The notes below the pieces were generated by a model. The model worked only from the letters and a program-made list of their open reading frames with translations. It was not told the origin of the DNA and did not search any database. A stretch of 64,000 nt of DNA, taken from the NCBI RefSeq assembly GCF_036588685.1, contig NC_086382.1, forward strand, positions 71,052,001-71,116,000, read 5' to 3'. This document shows positions 33,411 through 63,570 of the stretch, in pieces (position 1 is the stretch's first letter; each line of letters starts with the position of its first letter). Source of the DNA: Mytilus trossulus. Its lineage: Eukaryota. Both the position numbers and the translations under genes were made by a program.

Positions 33411-36400
33411 TCAAACTTCTCGCAGTTTGCAAAGTTCAAAACTGTATTCTCGGTCTCTACAAAATAAGAATACTTATGTAAACATTGGTGAATGAATATA
33501 ATTCCCTTTACATAAAAGTTGCATACGAAGCTGTGATTTTGATCGGCCGAGGCATATAAAGTTATATTTTATTTCCGTATTAAATCGCAGTTTCATCGTT
33601 CAGCAAAAATGTAAAGTTTAGAATGTTAAGCTTCCCTGAATTGTTTGAAACGGTTTGTATAAGTTGCTGCGTTTCATGATTTGCTTTTTTTTTTGACAAT
33701 TTAAGGTTTATGTAACAAGTTATTATCTGAATATTTGATTAAATGTTATTATCTTTTAAATGAATAAATTGAAAATAACATTTCTTTAAACGGATACAAT
33801 TTAGAAAACCACTTTCTTCCCATAATCACCCCAACCCCTTCTCATCCGAAGTTAAATCACAAGCACTAGTTAATAGTTATATAATCAAAGGTACCAGGCA
33901 TATAATTTAATACGTCAGACGCACGTTTCGTCTACATAAGACTCATCAGTGACGCGCAAATCAAAATATATATAAAGCCAACCAAGAGCATTGAGGACCG
34001 AAACTTCCAAAAAGTTGTGCAAAAAAACGGGTGAGGTAATCTATTTCTGGGATAAGAACACCCTTCGATTTACGAAAAACACATTTTTTTTGTAACAGGA
34101 AATTTATAAAAATGACCATATAATCAATATTCAGGTCAACACCGAAGTGCTCACTACTGAGCTGGTCATACTATTGGGGACCAAACGTCCACCAGCAGTG
34201 GCATCGTCTAAAAGGTCAATATAATTTACTTGGTAATACACTTTCCTCCTTTCTCTCGGATACCGGTTGCTCGTTATGTAGAAGGGACATGACAATTGAG
34301 GAACTGCAAAACAGTGTGGATTGTCCAAGTAAAAAATGTTCACAGAACCCATACACATATCAAACTTTAAGTGTTGTTTTAAGCTATGAGTAGGCAAATT
34401 GATATACATGACAAAATGGCCAACCGAAATCACATTAACATATTGAAAAAAAATATAAAACGATATGTTTTGGTTTAAAAGGATGAATTGAGAGATATTT
34501 CCTAAATTGGCTTGATTTATACATGGTTCATTAGTAACAAATGCTAGATAAACACCACGATTAAAGCTATTGACATTTTTTGGTTATTTTCAAACTTACT
34601 CATGTCTGTTATCATGGGTGCTGGTCACGCCCCTCATTACAAAATTCAGTGGAACATCAACAGAGAAATAGGCATCCCAATTGGTATGCGATGTCTGGTA
34701 GCATTCTGTAACATCAAAACCTGCAACAATAGTAAATAAGTGTAAGTAGACAATCATGGACAACAAGAAAAACGCCAAAATCGCTAAAAACAATGCACTT
34801 ACAATACACAAAACAACTTGGTTGAATGCAGATGATTCGCTAGTAACAACCATCGTGTTGCTAATGAAAATTATTATTATTTGACAAAATAGTACCTTTC
34901 AAAATTAGTTAAATGCGATTTTTTTAATTCATTCAATCGACAACGCAATCCTTTTTTTTCGAATGTGCATGTGTTCTCTAATAGTTGTAAAGGGCAGATA
35001 TGACAGTCGCATATAATACTTACGTTTGTTCATTAACACTCCTGTGGTTCAGATAATTAATGAAGACTTTTTTGTTTATCTCCAAAGTAATTTTGTATCC
35101 CTGTCTATGATGCAAACAATACAATGATACAAACATAATATTTAAGAAATGTTTGCCGCATATTGAGAGCCTATATCTGCAGCCTTTGAAAAAATAAAAA
35201 CACAAAAATACTGAACTCCGAGGAAAATTCAAAAAGGAAAATCAAAAATCAAAAGGCAAAATCAAAAGTCCAAACACATCAAACGAATGGATAACAACTG
35301 TCATATTCCTGACTTGGTACAGGTATTTTCTAATGTAGAAAATGGTGGATTGAACCTGGTTTTATAGCTAGCTAAACCTCTCACTTGTATGACAGTCGCA
35401 TCAAATTCCATTGCATTGTCAACGATGTTTGAACAAAACAAACATACTCAAAGAGTAAAAATGTCAAAAATAGGGGTACAACAGTCAATATTGTGTTATC
35501 ATCTTAATATCACTACATAAACAACAAATGTAACAAAGAATCACAAAAAGGCATACATCAATTAAACATTCTCATTTTGCTTTTCTTATACGGCTGAATT
35601 TATCTATGTAAAGTCTATCCATAAATGATAGAAGGTTTTCATTACTGGTGTAAAATTGCGCGTTTGAAATTCGCACAGGTAGACATAAAAATAATTTTGT
35701 CGTATGACGGCATACATAAATGCAGACTCACGTAAAGTAGATATAATAAAAAAACAGACTTAACAGTAAAAGTAATAATAATAAATAAAATAATGGTGTG
35801 ATTCAAAGTATGACGGGATACATAAGTACAGTTTCACGTCAAATACGGCGGAATTTATCTATGTAAAATCTACCCATAAATGATAGAAGGTTTTCATTAC
35901 TGGTGTAAAATTGCGCGTTTGAAATTCGCACAGGTAGACATAAAAATAATTTTGAAAAGGATAATACTTATGAAAAAATTAAACAATACAAAGCAGTAAA
36001 CCAACAACCTGAAATTAAATGGAAAAAAAATCCAAAAACCAACAACCAACGGCATCAGATATACATCAGACACCAAACTTGCGGTAAAAAAAAAACATTA
36101 GTCGGAGTTGACATTCTTTGACTAGAGACTATTTTATGGCAATCGATATCTGCTTCATATTTACCGTCATGTTCACAGCAGTAGAAATCCCACCGTCTAT
36201 CTTCACTTCCATTATCGTGAATACTTCTCATTCCATGTATGTATCCATGGAATTTACATTGAAATGCAAAGAATTCATCAAAACCATTTACATAGCCTGA
36301 ATAAAAGGAATAGAAATATGATAAAGATTAAAAATCGCCTTAAAGACATTTTTTCTCGTGTCCGGTATGTGTTTCGGCAAAATATGTTGTTGATTCTTAT

Positions 36401-45068: not shown

Positions 45069-47624
45069 ATGCCGACGTTAGTTTACCTTATCATATCTTT
45101 GATTAATGTAACGGTATATGCAGATTGCTGTCGAATAGTACGACAAGATAATCAAACAATTGCAGATTGCACCAGACTTAAATTAAATGATGTTCCGATA
45201 GATTTACCATTGGATATAGTAGGTCTTGATCTGAGCTACAATCAAATATCGATTATTAAAAACAATGTCTTTGAATCTTTTTCAAATTTGACTACACTAA
45301 CGATGGATTTTAACAATCTTCATACCATACATGAAGATGTCTTTAAAGGTTTAAAACACTTACGATGGCTTTCAATGAATCACAATCACCTTAACATATC
45401 GTCAAAAATATTTGGACTTGTACTTAGACCGTTATTAGGTCTACAACACTTAGATATCAGATACAATATAAATAAAACGTTGAATAAAGAAGGACCTATT
45501 GTTTATCCCTACTTCGGAAACCTGACATATTTAACCAATTTATATATGGATCTTGCTCAAAAACCACTCTTTAAGTTAAGTGGATTAAAAAAACTGTTGC
45601 AACTTAAGACCATAAAATTTGCAAAATGTTATTTGAACCAGATGTCTAATGACACCTTGGTAGATTCACCATCAACCATTACTGCAATCTACTTTCACAG
45701 GTGTGTCGGTACAATAAAGATTGTAGAAGCAGATTTTTTAAAGCCGTTTCCTTTACTTCAGATTTTAAGTATCGATGGAGCAGATGTGCCGTTAGAAGAT
45801 GCTTTAAAACTTCTTCAACCTTTTTTGCAGAAAAACTTGACCTCTATCACTTTCAAAGGGATTGTATCAAGTAATCCTGTGTTTATTACCTGTGAAATGG
45901 TTAAATATTTGCAGCGTATTTGTGTAAAAACTCTTGTTATAGCAAAATGTAATATTGTAGGATATGAGGAAAAGTCTCTACTAACATTTGATTATCCTGA
46001 ATGTCTAGAAAATATTGTACTCTCAGGCAACCGATTTTCAATAGCACTTGGATCTCATTTCACGGATCTGGTAGTATTAATGAAGAAAGCAATAAATATA
46101 AGATATTTTGACTTATCGTATAATGCTATTAATTTCAACAATATTGAATACTGCAATTTGAACGTACTTGAAAATCCTTTTTATAGAAAAGAAGTATATA
46201 TCGAAGGCTGCAAAATTAAAACTGGAACTGACAATGGAATTGAAATTTACAACTCAGAATTTTTGAACTCTCAAATAGTTAATGAATCAAAAGTTACAAT
46301 AGCTTTGCCTGCAAAGCTCACATTTCTACGAGTATCCCATTACATGACATCATATACTGAGACAGAACAAAAGTTAATTATAACTAATGCAAGTAATCTC
46401 AGATATTTAGATTTCTCGTACTGGCAGATTAAGCAGTTTCCTGAAATATATTCTGAGACTCCTTTTAATGTTAAATACATGGACATTTCTGGACTTAATG
46501 CAAGTATTCTAATTCATGAGACGTCAATACCGGTTTTTCAAAATGTCCAGACCGCTATTTTGAAAAATGCAATGCTGGGTCTAACAATTGGAAAGAATGG
46601 CAAAGTCTTTCAACTATTTCCGGCCGTAGCAAAACTAGATATATCATATAACAACTTATGGTATCTAGATAAAGATGCCTTTGAAACAAACGTAAACTTG
46701 TCAAATGTCAATATTGCACACAATTTACTGCAAGCTATACCTATAGCCGTGTTAGATGTGCCTAACTTAAGTAAACTGGATATAAGTTACAACCGCCTTC
46801 AAACAATAAATAAAACATTTAGAGATTGGATGGATGTGAAAAGTTATGGAGGAATATTTCATTTGTCGATAGAAGGAAACAGTCTTAAATGTACTTGCGA
46901 CACGTCAGATTTTATAAGGTGGATTTTCAGCACAGATGTCGTTTTTGATCGGGTCAATAAAAATTTCAGCTGCACACTGACGAATGGATCAGAAAGTAAC
47001 ACGGTGGTTATCTACACACGATTTCACGAACATTTTGGCAACTGCAATAACAAAAATTGGTTGCGCCTAGGAATAGGACTTCTTGTTGCATTCGTCGTGG
47101 TGACTGTTCCGTTGGCAGTGATTTTTAATTTCCGATGGAAAATAACTTTTTGGATATATCGTAACTTTAAAAGAGTTGTAGCAGACAGATTAGAAAGAAA
47201 ATTTAATTATGACATTTACTTGTCATATGCTGATGACATGCTTCAGTGGGTTCAAGGTGATTTTCTTCAGAGAATAGAGACGTCGTGGCACATGAAAGTA
47301 TGCGTGGAAGACCGCGATTTCAAACTTGGAGTGCCGAAAGCAGACGAAATAGCAAATGCTATAGCTGGCAGCAAACATGTTATATTTATCATGTCTGAGT
47401 CGTACAAAGATAACGAGTGGAACAAATTTGTAATCGAAAGAGTCACGTTCGAAAAATGCAGAAATTACTTACAAAAAATAATAATAGTAGTAAAACAAGC
47501 GTCAGTTAATAGTGTTCCACACGAGTTAGACGGCATTCTACAATATGTCACTATAATAAACTGGGCTGACAACGAGACTGGCTGGGACAAACTGCGCATG
47601 TCATTGTTCACTGATTCCTTTTAA
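45069..47624 (+). CDS. Toll-like receptor A (single-cysteine-cluster type; signal peptide, LRR-NT, LRRs, LRR-CT, TM, TIR), intronless CDS, 851 aa
   Basis: 851-aa ORF with hydrophobic N-terminus, LxxLDLSYNxI repeats, LRR-CT (GNSLKCTCD...C...C), TM LGIGLLVAFVVVTVPLAVIF, TIR box1 YDIYLSY and box2 CVEDRDF. Confidence 0.95.
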   Translation: MPTLVYLIISLINVTVYADCCRIVRQDNQTIADCTRLKLNDVPIDLPLDIVGLDLSYNQISIIKNNVFESFSNLTTLTMDFNNLHTIHEDVFKGLKHLRWLSMNHNHLNISSKIFGLVLRPLLGLQHLDIRYNINKTLNKEGPIVYPYFGNLTYLTNLYMDLAQKPLFKLSGLKKLLQLKTIKFAKCYLNQMSNDTLVDSPSTITAIYFHRCVGTIKIVEADFLKPFPLLQILSIDGADVPLEDALKLLQPFLQKNLTSITFKGIVSSNPVFITCEMVKYLQRICVKTLVIAKCNIVGYEEKSLLTFDYPECLENIVLSGNRFSIALGSHFTDLVVLMKKAINIRYFDLSYNAINFNNIEYCNLNVLENPFYRKEVYIEGCKIKTGTDNGIEIYNSEFLNSQIVNESKVTIALPAKLTFLRVSHYMTSYTETEQKLIITNASNLRYLDFSYWQIKQFPEIYSETPFNVKYMDISGLNASILIHETSIPVFQNVQTAILKNAMLGLTIGKNGKVFQLFPAVAKLDISYNNLWYLDKDAFETNVNLSNVNIAHNLLQAIPIAVLDVPNLSKLDISYNRLQTINKTFRDWMDVKSYGGIFHLSIEGNSLKCTCDTSDFIRWIFSTDVVFDRVNKNFSCTLTNGSESNTVVIYTRFHEHFGNCNNKNWLRLGIGLLVAFVVVTVPLAVIFNFRWKITFWIYRNFKRVVADRLERKFNYDIYLSYADDMLQWVQGDFLQRIETSWHMKVCVEDRDFKLGVPKADEIANAIAGSKHVIFIMSESYKDNEWNKFVIERVTFEKCRNYLQKIIIVVKQASVNSVPHELDGILQYVTIINWADNETGWDKLRMSLFTDSF

Positions 47625-57074: not shown

Positions 57075-57622
57075 AATGCAATTTGGATATAACAATTTTT
57101 TACATTGGCTAAAAGTTGCCGTCCAATCCACAGTTGACCAGGCGCAACTAAGGAGAGACCCGCCATTTTGAATTGATGAATCAACAAATGTTCAATTACT
57201 ACTATTTAATCGAAAATAAAACAACACCTACCTCAAATTCGCCGTTTTAATGTAATTTTATTCGAATTTGAAGCGTACAGGTAACGTAATAACCTCCAGT
57301 TTGTAAGTTTTCATTCGAATGACGTCACGTTTAGTTATGACGTCTTTGTGCCAAAATCAATCATGAAGTTTCGCGGATTTTTTTTTTGTTTTGACAAATT
57401 TAGACATTTTTTTAAGTTTTATCGTATTTTTTTCGCATTGTAATGCATCAGAATCGGAATAACAGTACTGTAGTTGAAGAGTTGTCACCGTCAATTTTGA
57501 TATGACGGTCGCAAATCTCCGTTTTACTGTCTCCGCTACGCGTCGCAATTAAAACTGCATTTGCGACCGTCAAATCTACAATTGACGGTGGCAACTCTTC
57601 AACTAGAGTACTGTTATTCCTT
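57075..57622. mobile_element. Unclassified (possibly Crypton-like) element with a long inverted repeat at its 3' end
   Basis: Arms of ~60 bp at 57456-57516 and 57559-57620; ATTGGCT motif near the 5' end; same layout as 9608-9955 and 29380-29676. Confidence 0.5.
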
Positions 57623-57676
57623 AAATAATATATATATTTTCATAGATGGCCTTCCAAATACCGTTTCGATCCCTAA

Positions 57677-57718
57677 CATCACTGAAGAGACATTTATTGT
57701 CGAAATCCGGATATGGTG
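57677..57718 (+). ncRNA. Type I minimal hammerhead ribozyme (array copy 1)
   Basis: CATCA-CTGAAGA-GAC atttatt GTC-GAA-ATCCGGAT-A-TGGTG: CUGANGA and GAAA core, 3-bp stem II, palindromic helix III, stem I CAUCA/UGGUG. Predicted cleavage after 57713. Confidence 0.82.
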
Positions 57719-58236
57719 TACTAAAGAAATATTGACACCGAATGTTTGTGGCACAACATCCTGTCCACAAGTTAACAATTTTTTTTTCTGTGACGTATTA
57801 AATTTATATTAACATCTTGTGATCAATTTTATTTGGCAATCGTCAATGGCAGTCAGCAGGGTTAAAGAACATCAGTTGTTCGACCTGTTAGTCAAATGCG
57901 TTTTGTTTAAATATACTTTTTCACGCTTTTGGTCTTTTGGAAAATGTTGTTTGTGCTGTTTTTAGACCCTTCTACAACGAAATTTGTTTGACATGCACAC
58001 GTATAAAAATTGCGGTTTTTATCCAACGCAGTCATAGGTTTGAACGTAGTTTTCAATTTAGACTCGTTTATATTTTTTGTTTGGGCATGTATCATATTTT
58101 CCCTCCGGTTTATATGATCCGTTCATCCTATATATTGACTCTTAAAATTCAAGAGTTAATCTAAAAATGAGGGTACTTTCTCTAAAAAATGAGGGTACTT
58201 TTTATATGGCCTTCCAAATACCGTTTCGATCCCTAA

Positions 58237-58278
58237 CATCACTGAAGAGACATTTATTGTCGAAATCCGGATATGGTG
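58237..58278 (+). ncRNA. Type I minimal hammerhead ribozyme (array copy 2)
   Basis: Identical to copy 1; predicted cleavage after 58273. Confidence 0.82.
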
Positions 58279-58798
58279 TACTAAAGAAATATTGACACCG
58301 AATGTTTGTGGCACAACATCCTGTCCACAAGTTAACAATTTTTTTTTTCTGTGACGTATTAAATTTATATTAACATCTTGTGATCAATTTTATTTGGCAA
58401 TCGTCAATGGCAGTCAGCAGGGTTAAAGAACATCAGTTGTTCGACCTGTTAGTCAAATGCGTTTTGTTTAAATATACTTTTTCACGCTTTTGGTCTTTTG
58501 GAAAATGTTGTTTGTGCTGTTTTTAGACCCTTCTACAACGAAATTTGTTTGACATGCACACGTATAAAAATTGCGGTTTTTATCCAACGCAGTCATAGGT
58601 TTGAACGTAGTTTTCAATTTAGACTCGTTTATATTTTTTGTTTGGGCATGTATCATATTTTCCCTCCGGTTTATATGATCCGTTCATCCTATATATTGAC
58701 TCTTAAAATTCAAGAGTTAATCTAAAAATTAGGGTACTTTCTCTAAAAAAATGAGGGTACTTTTTATATGGCCTTCCAAATACCGTTTCGATCCCTAA

Positions 58799-58840
58799 CA
58801 TCACTGAAGAGACATTTATTGTCGAAATCCGGATATGGTG
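58799..58840 (+). ncRNA. Type I minimal hammerhead ribozyme (array copy 3)
   Basis: Identical to copy 1; predicted cleavage after 58835. Confidence 0.82.
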
Positions 58841-61008
58841 TACTAAAGAAATATTGACACCGAATGTTTGTGGCACAACATCCTGTCCACAAGTTAACAA
58901 TTTTTTTTTTCTGTGACGTATTAAATTTATATTAACATCTTGTGATCAATTTTATTTGGCAATCGTCAATGGCAGTCAGCAGGGTTAAAGAACATCAGTT
59001 GTTCGACCTGTTAGTCAAATGCGTTTTGTTTAAATATACTTTTTCACGCTTTTGGTCTTTTGGAAAATGTTGTTTGTGCTGTTTTTAGACCCTTCTACAA
59101 CGAAATTTGTTTGACATGCACACGTATAAAAATTGCGGTTTTTATCCAACGCAGTCATAGGTTTGAACGTAGTTTTCAATTTAGACTCGTTTATTTTCAT
59201 AGATGTATATACGAAGGTAAACGTAAAATAGTAATTTATTATGAATCAAAACCTGTTTTTTTTTTTCGCGTGGTTTATACTTCTGAAAATTCTCAAATTT
59301 TAAAGCTAATGAAATTTATTAGTCAATATATATCTATATTTATTCATATGACAAATCTCACTGAAGATGTCTACACAAAACAACTGGTTAGACATTCACC
59401 GAAGTTTAATGCAATAAATCTGAATGTATGACGTATTTTCTATAGTCGTAATAACAAGTAGATTTAAAACATACAAAAAGATTTTCATTATATCTTTTAA
59501 TAGATGATAATATCTAACATTCAGTTTAACATCCAGAAAAAATGTTTCCACATTTAAAACTTAATGTAGATAATCTGCCTATCTTACCGCTGCACCGGGG
59601 TACCTGATTCGCCATTTTTTTTTAAACTATTTTGTTTGTCAATTTTTAGGTTTCTTTGCAGAGTTTTTGAATTGTTTGCCTTTTTTTTATATTCTCGTAT
59701 TAGCTACTATGTTGTCTATTCTATTTCACTTGAGACCTTTTTTTGTTATCTCCTTGGTATCGCTCCTCTTTATTAGAACAATTGATTGGGACTGCTTGCT
59801 ATCAATTTGAAAAGTCCAGATAACTGACTTATGCTTCACTTAAGTTACAGTACTAGGCATACATATATTCCCGTTTATAAAAAAGTAAATGTGGTATGTT
59901 TGCCAATGAGACAAATGGTTTAACACTAGTAATTTTTTGGACCCTGTATAGCTTGCTGTTGGGTGTGAGCCAATGCTCCGTGTTGAAGACCGTACCTTGA
60001 CCTATAATGGTTTATTTAAATAAATTGTGACTAAACACTTGAATGATGAGTTGTCTCGTTAGCACTCATCTCACATCTTCCTATATCTATGCATATATTG
60101 CCCTCGCAATGGACGATGAAAAATACATTACAATAGTTGAGCACATATAACATTCATTCCGACAGTTATGTAAATGTCATGTTCTCTTGACACCTGTATT
60201 CAATAAAAAATAACAAGTTTTTATTTATTTACAATATGCCTAAAGCAAAGAGTATCAAATGTATGACAAATTAAAAAAAGAAGTCAAGCGGTAATAGATA
60301 CTCAGCAACCAAAACAGATACAGAAAAAAGACAAATACAAATAAACAACAGTCAATACTTTTAATAGACAAAAGTCAAACTCAAGCAGCACATACAGTTT
60401 TCTCAATCTACAACGCAACATGGTTGTCGATAGCTGCTTACATCAACGTCATTTGAACTACATTGTATTGTGGGTATTTATATCATTGACGATTATTCCA
60501 AGCCTAGTGATTTTTTTGTTCGGCGTACCATCTGCATAATCAAAAGTACACACGTGTGCTGCGCATAGACAACTATCGTATTCACATCTATTCCAATGAC
60601 TGGATTGGTAAAAAACAGAATTTTAAGAATTTTGGATTCCCAAAGGTCTTCAACTGCATAATTGTTTGGGCTTTTATGTTTCTTTTTTTATTCTATCGTT
60701 TTTGATATGTTTTTTGAATTTGTTCACAATTTTAATCATATTATACGATAACATACTTTAATGTATCCACAACTACAAGGGTTGTCTTTTAAGCTTTTAA
60801 CTTGCTTCATTTAGCATTTGAGAATTTACCAAGATAATTAGTATCTTATTAAACAATTTTAAAAATATTCAATCATCAGTCAACTTCAAATTCGTAACAT
60901 TCAACTAGTGTAATTCATTTTTTTCTTTGACAGATCTAGGATAAGAAACGTCCAAAGTTCAAGTTTCAAACATCGATAATTTACACAGTATAAGTATCAT
61001 TTGCCGCA

Positions 61009-63570
61009 ATGAAACATTTGGCTAAACTGGTATTTTACTTGCTCATGCTGTGTTGTCATTCTGGATCTTCTAAAACATGTCGAATGAAAGAAAGAAACAC
61101 TATTGCAGACTGCACAAAGAGTGGACTACAAGACATACCTAAATACTTGCCACTGAACATATCAGAGCTTGATCTAAGTCATAATAAAATATCGTTCCTT
61201 AGAAACAATGCATTCCAACGATTTGAGAATTTGACGGTATTAAAGCTTGATTATAACAATTTAGAGAACATTGACACAGAATCCTTCAATGGTCTCTCCA
61301 AACTCAGATGGCTTTCAATGGAGAAAAATAAACTTGATATTTCATCACGTGATTTCAAACATGTATTTAAACCTCTGAATAATTTGAACCATTTAGACAT
61401 TAGATACAATATGGATAAATTGGTAACCAAAGCTACAGTAGAATATCCATTTTTCGGTTACATGTCTAACCTGACAACTCTATATATGGACCTGGCTGAA
61501 AACCCTGTTTTCAATTCGAGTGGTTTTGAGTTGATGCTTAACCTTCAAACTGTTAGATTTGAAAAATGCTATTTAAAACAAATGCTTAACGACACTTTGA
61601 TAAACTTGCCACGAAATATTATCTCAATTTATTTTTATAGGTGTTATTCGTTTATATCGTTTGTAGAACCTAACTTTTTAAGACCTTTTCCTGTACTGAA
61701 GGAACTAACTATGTTTAAAGTTCGTGTCCGATTCGACGATGCATTGAAACTTTTGTACCCGTTCACTGGCAAGGAAATGACATCGATAAGCTTTATACAA
61801 GTAATTGGGTTTGCAGCTAAGCCAGTCTTCATTACTCGTGATATGGTGAAATATCTAAAAGAAATTTGCGTTCAAACATTAGTTCTAGGAGAAAGTGAAA
61901 TAGTTGGATATGAGGAAAATTCTTTACTTGCGTTTAAATATCCACAATGTTTGGAATATGTTGTATTTTCAGGCAATCGGTTTTCACTGGGAATAGAAAA
62001 TCATGAAATGGAACTCATAGTTGTTGCAATGAAAGCAACAAATTTGAAGTACTTTGACTTATCGTACAATGCCATTAATTTCAATGATGTGACGTACTGT
62101 AATATTGAGGCTCTTCGAAATGTTTCTTATAGAAACGAAATATACAGCAATGGGTGTGAAGTTAAAACGAAAGTAGCTGAACAATATCAAATTTCAAATT
62201 CAAATCTTCGATATTCTGACATGACTGAAGAAATAAATATAACTGTTTCGATGCCTGCAAACCTAACCTTTTTCCGACTATCGCATTATATGACATCATA
62301 TAAAGAGTACGGACTAAATTTCTTTGTAAAAAACTCAGCTACTTTGAGATACCTGGATTTGTCGTACTGGAAAGTTTCATATTTTCCAAATATATACTCC
62401 GTCACTCCATTCAACATAAAATATTTGGACTTAACTGGTGTCAGCTCAATGCTTTTTATCCACAAATCATCAGTGCCTATATTTCAAAATATCGAAACTG
62501 CAATTATGAAGGATACAATGATTGATGAAACCATTAGAAGAAATGGTAATGTATTTAAACTATTCCCGACTGTTGAAAAGTTCGATATATCATACAACAA
62601 TGTCTTATATCTGGATGATGATTCTTTTTTGTTGAATACAAGACTATCGAACCTGAACATGGCAAACAATTTACTATCAACAATTCCAAAGGCAGTGATG
62701 AGTTTAGCGCACCTTAATAGATTGGATATCAGATATAATCGAATTCAGACAATTGGACAAACATTCAGAACATGGCTTGATTCGAAAAGTGAAAGTAGAA
62801 AGTTTCTTCTACTTATAAAAGGTAATAGTTTCAAATGTACGTGTGATACATCCGATTTCATTCAGTGGATATTCAACACGAAAGTTGATTTCGATCAAAA
62901 CAAAAAACGATACAATTGTACTTTGACTAACGGAACAGAAACCAATACATTGTTGGTTTATAGTCGGTTTCATGACCATTTCGGTAACTGTGATAGCAAA
63001 ACTTGGTTACGTTTAGGTATTGGCCTCATCGTTTCCTTTTTTGGTTTGACTATAATTATTGCCGTTATCTTTAACTTTCGATGGAAAATCACATATTGGG
63101 TATACCAAAATTTTAGGAAGGCAGTAGAAAAAAGGTTGGAAAGAAAGTTTAGATATGACATCTACTTGACATATGCTGATGACAGAATTCAATGGGTTCG
63201 TGAAGTTCTCCTGCCGCGTATAGAAAATTCATGGAACATGACCGTCTGCATAGAAGATCGGGATTTCGAGCTTGGAATTTCGCAGGCAGATGCAATAGCA
63301 AATGCCATTGCGGGAAGTAAACATGCAATTTTCATAATTTCAGATATATACAACGATAAATCCTGGAGTCAGTATGAAATTGAAAGAGTAAAATATGAAA
63401 AATGTTCAAATTATTTGCAAAAAACTGTTGTTATTGTAAAAGATGCAAATGTGTCTTCAATTTTACACGAATTAGACAACATTTTACAACATTTGATAAT
63501 AATAGATTGGACTAATGATGAAACTGGTTGGGATAAATTACGTATGGCATTGTTTACGGAAGCTTTTTGA
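61009..63570 (+). CDS. Toll-like receptor B, tandem paralogue of the 45-kb TLR, intronless CDS, 853 aa
   Basis: 853-aa ORF colinear with TLR A over its whole length (LDLSHNKI, FDLSYNAINF, GNSFKCTCDTSDFI, WLRLGIGL, YDIYLTY, CIEDRDF, NETGWDKLRM-like end). Splice acceptor (tttctttgacag, ending 60933) upstream of the ATG. Confidence 0.95.
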   Translation: MKHLAKLVFYLLMLCCHSGSSKTCRMKERNTIADCTKSGLQDIPKYLPLNISELDLSHNKISFLRNNAFQRFENLTVLKLDYNNLENIDTESFNGLSKLRWLSMEKNKLDISSRDFKHVFKPLNNLNHLDIRYNMDKLVTKATVEYPFFGYMSNLTTLYMDLAENPVFNSSGFELMLNLQTVRFEKCYLKQMLNDTLINLPRNIISIYFYRCYSFISFVEPNFLRPFPVLKELTMFKVRVRFDDALKLLYPFTGKEMTSISFIQVIGFAAKPVFITRDMVKYLKEICVQTLVLGESEIVGYEENSLLAFKYPQCLEYVVFSGNRFSLGIENHEMELIVVAMKATNLKYFDLSYNAINFNDVTYCNIEALRNVSYRNEIYSNGCEVKTKVAEQYQISNSNLRYSDMTEEINITVSMPANLTFFRLSHYMTSYKEYGLNFFVKNSATLRYLDLSYWKVSYFPNIYSVTPFNIKYLDLTGVSSMLFIHKSSVPIFQNIETAIMKDTMIDETIRRNGNVFKLFPTVEKFDISYNNVLYLDDDSFLLNTRLSNLNMANNLLSTIPKAVMSLAHLNRLDIRYNRIQTIGQTFRTWLDSKSESRKFLLLIKGNSFKCTCDTSDFIQWIFNTKVDFDQNKKRYNCTLTNGTETNTLLVYSRFHDHFGNCDSKTWLRLGIGLIVSFFGLTIIIAVIFNFRWKITYWVYQNFRKAVEKRLERKFRYDIYLTYADDRIQWVREVLLPRIENSWNMTVCIEDRDFELGISQADAIANAIAGSKHAIFIISDIYNDKSWSQYEIERVKYEKCSNYLQKTVVIVKDANVSSILHELDNILQHLIIIDWTNDETGWDKLRMALFTEAF

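Follow-up and report, generated by a model that had tools for sequence, protein, structure and literature searches.

A 560-nt hammerhead-bearing tandem family in Mytilus trossulus, probably a non-LTR retrozyme, resembles a young Penelope-like element at its insertion boundary

The means by which animal retrozymes are mobilised has been an open question since 2020, and a Penelope-like element (PLE) partner has been hypothesised from co-occurrence only. Retrozymes and this hypothesised partner have been described in mussels, where the units of Mytilus are 350-390 bp long (PMC7229834). In this study, a stretch of 64,000 nucleotides of Mytilus trossulus DNA (RefSeq assembly GCF_036588685.1, contig NC_086382.1, positions 71,052,001 to 71,116,000, forward strand; hereafter the window) was analysed, in which a tandem array of near-identical units with hammerhead ribozymes lies close to the downstream end. 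The locus raises two questions: what kind of element the array represents, and which machinery could have inserted it.

The array occupies positions 57646-59194 (+) of the window, and its 1549 bp comprise 2.76 head-to-tail units of 560 or 562 nt, as determined by sequence reading, repeat finding and pairwise alignment. Tandem Repeats Finder was blank on the array because its longest period (500) is shorter than the unit, and repeat finding and BLAST were used instead. Pairwise alignment revealed one G/T substitution and two homopolymer indels between the units, in agreement with an earlier sequence-only reading of this DNA (the original prediction), which had reported about 2.75 near-identical units with mainly homopolymer differences. 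When the array is divided at the predicted ribozyme cleavage sites, it consists of a 68-nt partial unit at the 5′ side (57646-57713), monomer 1 of 560 nt (57714-58273), monomer 2 of 562 nt (58274-58835) and a 359-nt partial unit at the 3′ side (58836-59194), all on the plus strand. The GC content is 33.8%. As had also been predicted, the array contains no credible open reading frame (ORF); apart from one frame running into the flank, the longest encodes 83 aa from a TTG start. No long terminal repeat (LTR), primer-binding site or polypurine tract was found in the array, and its terminal repeats are confined to the target-site duplication (TSD). The 14-bp direct repeat noticed earlier around the array was recovered as TATTTTCATAGATG at 57635-57648 and 59192-59205 (unstranded). 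The last 3 nt of the left copy coincide with the first bases of the element and the repeat overlaps the element by 3 nt at either end, so the TSD measures 8-14 bp. The target was TA-rich but not pure (TA)n DNA, and for this reason the TSD is readable here and both junctions are unambiguous. This copy is therefore specially useful, and an empty allele can be sought. We consider it likely that the array was produced by a single recent insertion, and that the inserted retroelement, which is non-coding and non-autonomous, belongs to the non-LTR retrozymes of animals.

A genome search by BLASTN, one of the checks proposed with the original prediction, placed the array in a dispersed young family. 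The 560-bp unit was found at 97-100% identity in at least 233 places, and the family occupies at least 36 loci on at least 15 contigs, including most large contigs (for this count, 36 of 390 candidate regions were scored in the 1.3-Gb assembly). Twenty loci were fetched, and the ends of 18 young arrays were analysed, with unit positions counted from the cleavage site. The 3′ end lay at unit position 359-363 in 14 of the 18 (exceptions at 323, 335 and 346), and a fragment of only 40 nt also ends at position 360. The 5′ ends were scattered over the unit, at positions 1, 34, 59, 109, 113, 117, 156, 169, 244, 289, 292, 323, 343, 416 and 490, among others. The array in the window conforms to this pattern, as it is truncated at the 5′ side, begins at unit position ~493 and stops at ~360, the fixed 3′ end of the family. 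The internal site at which arrays of the family end is marked by the 3′ terminal motif TTTAGACTCGTTTATAT at 58057-58073 (+), which recurs at 58618-58634 and occurs for the third time at the actual 3′ junction of the array (59180-59194, +). Just beyond this boundary, a stem-loop with a 7-bp stem, CATGTATC...GATCC, is located at 58086-58120 (+) and recurs at 58647-58681. Nearly all young arrays are flanked by (TA)n on both sides, and TSDs at the other loci are masked by it. At other loci, array size starts at 1.6 units and reaches at least 15 full units. A fixed 3′ end, a variable 5′ end and (TA)n flanks are the signature of target-primed reverse transcription with a defined start and premature termination, and the same architecture of fixed 3′ and truncated 5′ ends characterises PLE insertions (PMC8557442).

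The older members of the family were compared with the young one. Subfamilies at 95%, 87-90% and 77-78% identity retain two specially conserved parts, namely the hammerhead with ~45 nt upstream of it and the ~110 nt that end at the 3′ boundary. A 22-23-nt tandem duplication (AAAAATGAGGGTACTTT...; window 58163-58206 and 58724-58768) is present in the young subfamily and absent from the subfamily at 87-90%, and a 14-nt segment near unit position 95 is missing from the young subfamily and present in the older and 95-96% subfamilies. Young arrays often have an older array of the family as neighbour, at 77-90% identity and in either orientation (L031, L037, L043, L048, L041 and L050, where L numbers denote loci); L041 contains a higher-order repeat of whole arrays, and L050 contains head-to-head inverted arrays. 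The pattern suggests that (TA)n tails of earlier insertions were used repeatedly as targets.

Each unit carries one type I hammerhead on the plus strand, at 57675-57720, 58235-58280 and 58797-58842. Every copy comprises helix I ACAUCA/UGGUGU, the core CUGAAGA, helix II GACA/UGUC with a 5-nt loop, and GAAA; helix III is the palindromic UCCGGA inside A...U, and the cleavage-site base is A17 (H17=A). The pairs G10.1-C11.1 and A15.1-U16.1 are present in three of three copies, and the conserved core is complete; it is also intact in nearly all young units of the family. The predicted cleavage sites, after 57713, 58273 and 58835, follow from this layout and coincide with those originally proposed. 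Another CUGAAGA at about 59362 was ruled out as a hammerhead because no GAAA follows its helix. A hammerhead motif with variant helices, of the type found in the 354-bp retrozymes described below, occurs in the window at 33911-33956 (-); it is a pattern match only and lies below the Rfam gathering threshold.

Covariation was used to evaluate the proposed ribozyme. With the Rfam Hammerhead_1 model, 42 matches over threshold were obtained in the whole genome among 74 candidates scored, and these belong to tandem repeats of 354-358 bp. The 354-bp family, which has the size of published mussel retrozymes, scores 34.8-40.9 bits, and the architecture of the 560-family hammerhead equals that of its Rfam-positive ribozymes base for base. 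When 16 variants from the 560 family and the Rfam-positive 354-bp family were aligned, 97.3% of cells were paired, compared with 14-46% in slid controls. Both sides had changed in 6 of 14 pairs, with compensatory changes in all three helices, and the observed pairing percentage or covariation score was reached by 0/500 shuffles. These double changes mostly separate the two families and therefore count as few independent events. In the 560 family, an older subfamily has helix III UCUAGA for UCCGGA and C17 for A17. Together with the core nucleotides in all three copies, the covariation with the 354-bp family bears out the earlier claim of a complete type I hammerhead in every unit. The single-copy fold (-3.1 kcal/mol) competes with an alternative fold of -9.1 kcal/mol; when two copies are folded together, a double hammerhead joined by an intermolecular helix III of 8 bp results, at -26.7 kcal/mol. 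The double hammerheads of newt satellite 2 and avocado sunblotch viroid similarly have a palindromic helix III that is too short for one molecule, and two copies form the active double hammerhead; they differ from the 560 family in sequence, host and genomic context. From the sequence we infer self-cleavage, monomeric or circular RNA, and rolling-circle copying.

The family was then compared with known mussel retrozymes. Like the non-LTR retrozymes of M. galloprovincialis (Cervera & de la Pena 2020, PMC7229834), it consists of low-GC non-coding tandem units, each with a single type I hammerhead whose helix III is short and palindromic and which lacks the classic loop-loop contacts; it has TSDs longer than 4 bp and co-exists with PLEs. 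At the level of sequence, the 560 family thus has the features of a metazoan non-LTR retrozyme: tandem units, a type I hammerhead, no ORF, low GC, a TSD of more than 4 bp and a dispersed young family. Its unit is 560 nt long, whereas mussel retrozymes have 350-390, and apart from the ribozyme no resemblance to the 354-bp unit was detected, although the two families are alike in hammerhead architecture and in the bases just outside helix I. Relative to the 354-bp family, all three helices are compensatorily changed, A occupies N7, the base at the cleavage site is A instead of C, and an Rfam score is lacking. The arrays also end differently, 360 nt past the cleavage site and in (TA)n in the 560 family, and at a fixed point 40 nt past it and not in (TA)n in the 354-bp family; it is therefore probable that partner or recognition site differs between the two families. 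The original prediction had regarded the unit as large and possibly as marking an undescribed family. Its size does not set it apart, since 560 nt falls inside the 51-972 bp published for vertebrate retrozyme consensus sequences, which have been interpreted as non-autonomous elements derived from PLE termini (Li, Clavereau & Pollet 2026 preprint, 10.64898/2026.07.22.740005); its distinctness from the published 350-390-bp mussel families stands.

Evidence on the partner came from PLE pieces in four fetched retrozyme loci (L032, L035, L047 and L049), which represent one PLE group. An ORF in L032 encodes the end of a reverse transcriptase (RT), a C-x2-C-x5-C-x2-C linker and a GIY-YIG-like C-terminus, the motifs being read by eye. 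In this ORF, Pfam finds RVT_1 only, and GIY-YIG was not detected by Pfam in the C-terminus even at E<=10; the ESM Atlas neighbours of the protein carry both RVT_1 and GIY-YIG. The ORF is followed by a 720-nt 3′ untranslated region (UTR), which ends in (TA)n and lies tail to tail with a retrozyme array. A related PLE 3′ UTR is present in L035, L047 and L049, and its terminus is TTTAGACTTGTTATATAT in L035 and L047, compared with TTTAGACTCGTTTATAT in the retrozyme. Past this terminus, a PLE tail of ~95-110 nt follows in L035, in L049 and in one of two copies at L047. It contains a stem-loop framed by ATC...GATCC and then TTGACT; the same layout is found past the retrozyme boundary at 58086-58120. 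The inner stem differs yet stays paired, with ATAT/ATAT in the retrozyme, GTTA/TAAC in L049 and ATG/TAT in L035. The local alignment score between the 120-nt boundary segments of the retrozyme and the L035 PLE was 58, against 31.7 +/- 5.7 for shuffles (0/500, z 4.6). In the 354-bp family, likeness to the stem-loop is weak at best. The PLE 3′ UTR and tail (L035:3977-4222, -) were found at ~100% identity in at least 40 places, often as tandems exactly 3,531 bp apart; because of these near-identical copies, this PLE family appears to be very young and is probably active. A minimal hammerhead-like motif (CUGACGA, a 5-bp helix and GAAA, followed by a 12-nt AT palindrome) was noticed in the PLE 3′ UTR at L032:1950-1985 and L035:4120-4160; its A15.1 lacks a U16.1 partner in the register tried, and it is a candidate only.

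These observations connect the retrozyme with a specific PLE. (TA)n is found at the 3′ ends of both the retrozyme arrays and the PLE copies, and PLEs are known to favour (TA)n and to carry tail extensions (Craig et al. 2021, PMC8557442). The retrozyme arrays share partial tandems, a fixed 3′ end and 5′ truncation with Naiads and with PLEs that have a C-terminal GIY-YIG and a CxxC linker (Neptune/Nematis-type layout), and further common features are inverted copies next to each other, a preference for (TA)n and a tail past the 3′ boundary (PMC8557442). The retrozyme itself is not an autonomous PLE, as no RT/GIY-YIG ORF exists in the unit and its PLE-like properties are confined to the insertion architecture and the boundary module; its length is a sixth of that of the 3.53-kb PLE unit, and it carries a canonical rather than a minimal hammerhead. 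We conclude that the retrozyme is probably mobilised by a young PLE with a C-terminal endonuclease, known here from pieces. The link to Penelope-like RTs in the original prediction is accordingly strengthened as regards insertion architecture (fixed 3′ end, 5′ truncation and (TA)n) and the shared boundary module; mobilisation itself is deduced from these.

A third family shows a comparable boundary. A tandem repeat of ~441 bp adjoins many retrozyme arrays in (TA)n (L045:1-2100, L044:3200-4700, L048:5800-6501, L047:1250-2100, L049:3600-4100 and other loci). Its boundary layout is like that of the retrozyme, with TTTAGACGAGTTGTATATA followed by CATGTATC-stem-GATCC, and no Rfam match was obtained for it. 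A tRNA origin for its B-box-like GGTTCGAATCC was rejected, as ARAGORN finds no tRNA. The layout common to these elements consists of the 3′ terminal motif TTTAGAC..GTT..TATAT, the boundary, the covarying stem-loop CATGTATC-stem-GATCC, and TTGACT. We tentatively propose, as a conjecture that may well fail, that the retrozyme, the young PLE and the unrelated 441-bp family share one bipartite module straddling the insertion boundary, and that the PLE RT needs the stem-loop downstream of its start.

A mechanism can be proposed on this basis. The arrays would be transcribed as multimers, in which neighbouring hammerheads would pair via the palindromic helix III into a double hammerhead and release monomers of 560/562 nt, and a host RNA ligase would close these into circles. 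The PLE endonuclease would nick (TA)n, and the PLE RT would recognise the boundary module, i.e. the 3′ motif TTTAGACTCGTTTATAT and the downstream stem-loop, while the nicked (TA)n end would pair with UAUAU as primer. Copying would then follow the circle, or else an uncut multimer, over distances that vary; since every copy would begin from one start, arrays with a common 3′ end and different 5′ ends would result.

Whether a circle serves as the template was examined through the variation among units. The mean number of substitutions between units was 2.4 within arrays and 4.4 between arrays, and none of 1000 label permutations gave a within-array mean as low. In L034, L039, L046 and L048, all units carry private variants, with few or no partial variants. 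Such uniformity within arrays fits the copying of a one-unit template, i.e. a circle, and could also be produced by homogenisation or by a homogeneous parent array. Periodic variants were observed in L007, a long array, and arrays may have grown through unequal crossing-over after insertion. These variants in some arrays equally suggest multi-unit templates, and the same PLE-dependent element might be inserted from read-through multimeric linear transcripts or by template jumping, with the hammerhead as an inherited feature of the PLE pseudo-LTR (pLTR) that only processes transcripts. Several facts agree with a linear template: a fixed 3′ end, 5′ truncation, tandems and adjacent inverted copies are exactly what PLE insertions look like, and circles are not thought to be required for these (PMC8557442); and the 441-bp family has the boundary module and forms arrays while lacking an Rfam ribozyme match. 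However, the core is intact in nearly all young units and the helices covary, the private variants in every unit of several arrays are what a one-unit template predicts, and related mussel retrozymes are abundantly circular in vivo (PMC7229834). On balance, a linear template appears rather unlikely.

Some points weigh against a PLE-mobilised retrozyme with a circular intermediate, possible growth by crossing-over being one of them. For the array, Rfam Hammerhead_1 (RF00163) gave no match at gathering (34 bits), nor at E<=10 in a search of 2.3 kb, and the Infernal check proposed earlier was thus negative. The 560-nt monomer has a minimum free energy of -117 kcal/mol, with a z of -0.9 relative to shuffles, and is not more structured than these, in contrast to published retrozyme circles, which are described as highly self-paired. 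The likeness between retrozyme and PLE is confined to ~110 nt spanning the 3′ boundary; beyond the terminal CGTTTATAT, no significant similarity was found between the L032 PLE 3′ UTR (without tail) and the retrozyme unit. (TA)n is a target of Naiad-type PLEs as well (PMC8557442). A satellite or minisatellite of the ordinary kind, dispersed by segmental duplications and enlarged by unequal crossing-over, with a hammerhead that is fortuitous or vestigial, would account for a tandem repeat whose monomer lacks a significant overall fold and an Rfam match. Nevertheless, it is very unlikely in view of the 36 or more dispersed loci, whose flanks are unrelated and whose arrays have the 3′ end in common and differ at the 5′ end, of the TSD, of the compensatory changes in all three hammerhead helices, and of the boundary module that also occurs in the PLE. 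Near-identical tandem units are prone to mis-assembly, and the copy number of 2.76 rests on the assembly; yet the unique junctions on both sides, the clean TSD and the same architecture at many loci make a collapsed or expanded repeat extremely improbable. Readings as a satellite, a DNA transposon or an assembly artefact were rejected on the junction evidence, and insertion of a non-LTR retrozyme is retained as the explanation of the array.

The surroundings of the array were also inspected. A near-perfect palindrome of 165 bp (window 57456-57620) lies directly upstream of it, with 41-nt arms that are 95% complementary and an inner 18-nt pair. It looks like a miniature inverted-repeat transposable element or a foldback element, and its sole Rfam matches are plant miRNA hairpin families, far below threshold. 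Two intronless ORFs at 45069-47624 and 61009-63570 (+) encode Toll-like receptor-like paralogues of 851 and 853 aa with LRR and TIR domains; the array is located 1.8 kb upstream of the second.

The kind of element described here is already known, namely the animal retrozyme; the present addition is a boundary module that it has in common with one specific young PLE. Relatedness between retrozymes and pLTRs has been reported in Xenopus (10.64898/2026.07.22.740005). The vertebrate work differs in that it is based on Repbase similarity and trees, and it describes no fixed internal 3′ end, (TA)n targeting or boundary-spanning module. For the mobilisation of animal retrozymes, the 560 family offers testable handles, including a defined internal RT start, a defined (TA)n target and a ~110-nt module that recurs in a PLE family whose copies are abundant and near-identical. 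If the RT does need the downstream stem-loop, only circular or tandem RNA templates can supply it. This requirement would account for the constant tandem arrangement of PLEs and their parasites, and the circles made by the hammerhead would gain a mechanistic role in mobilisation.

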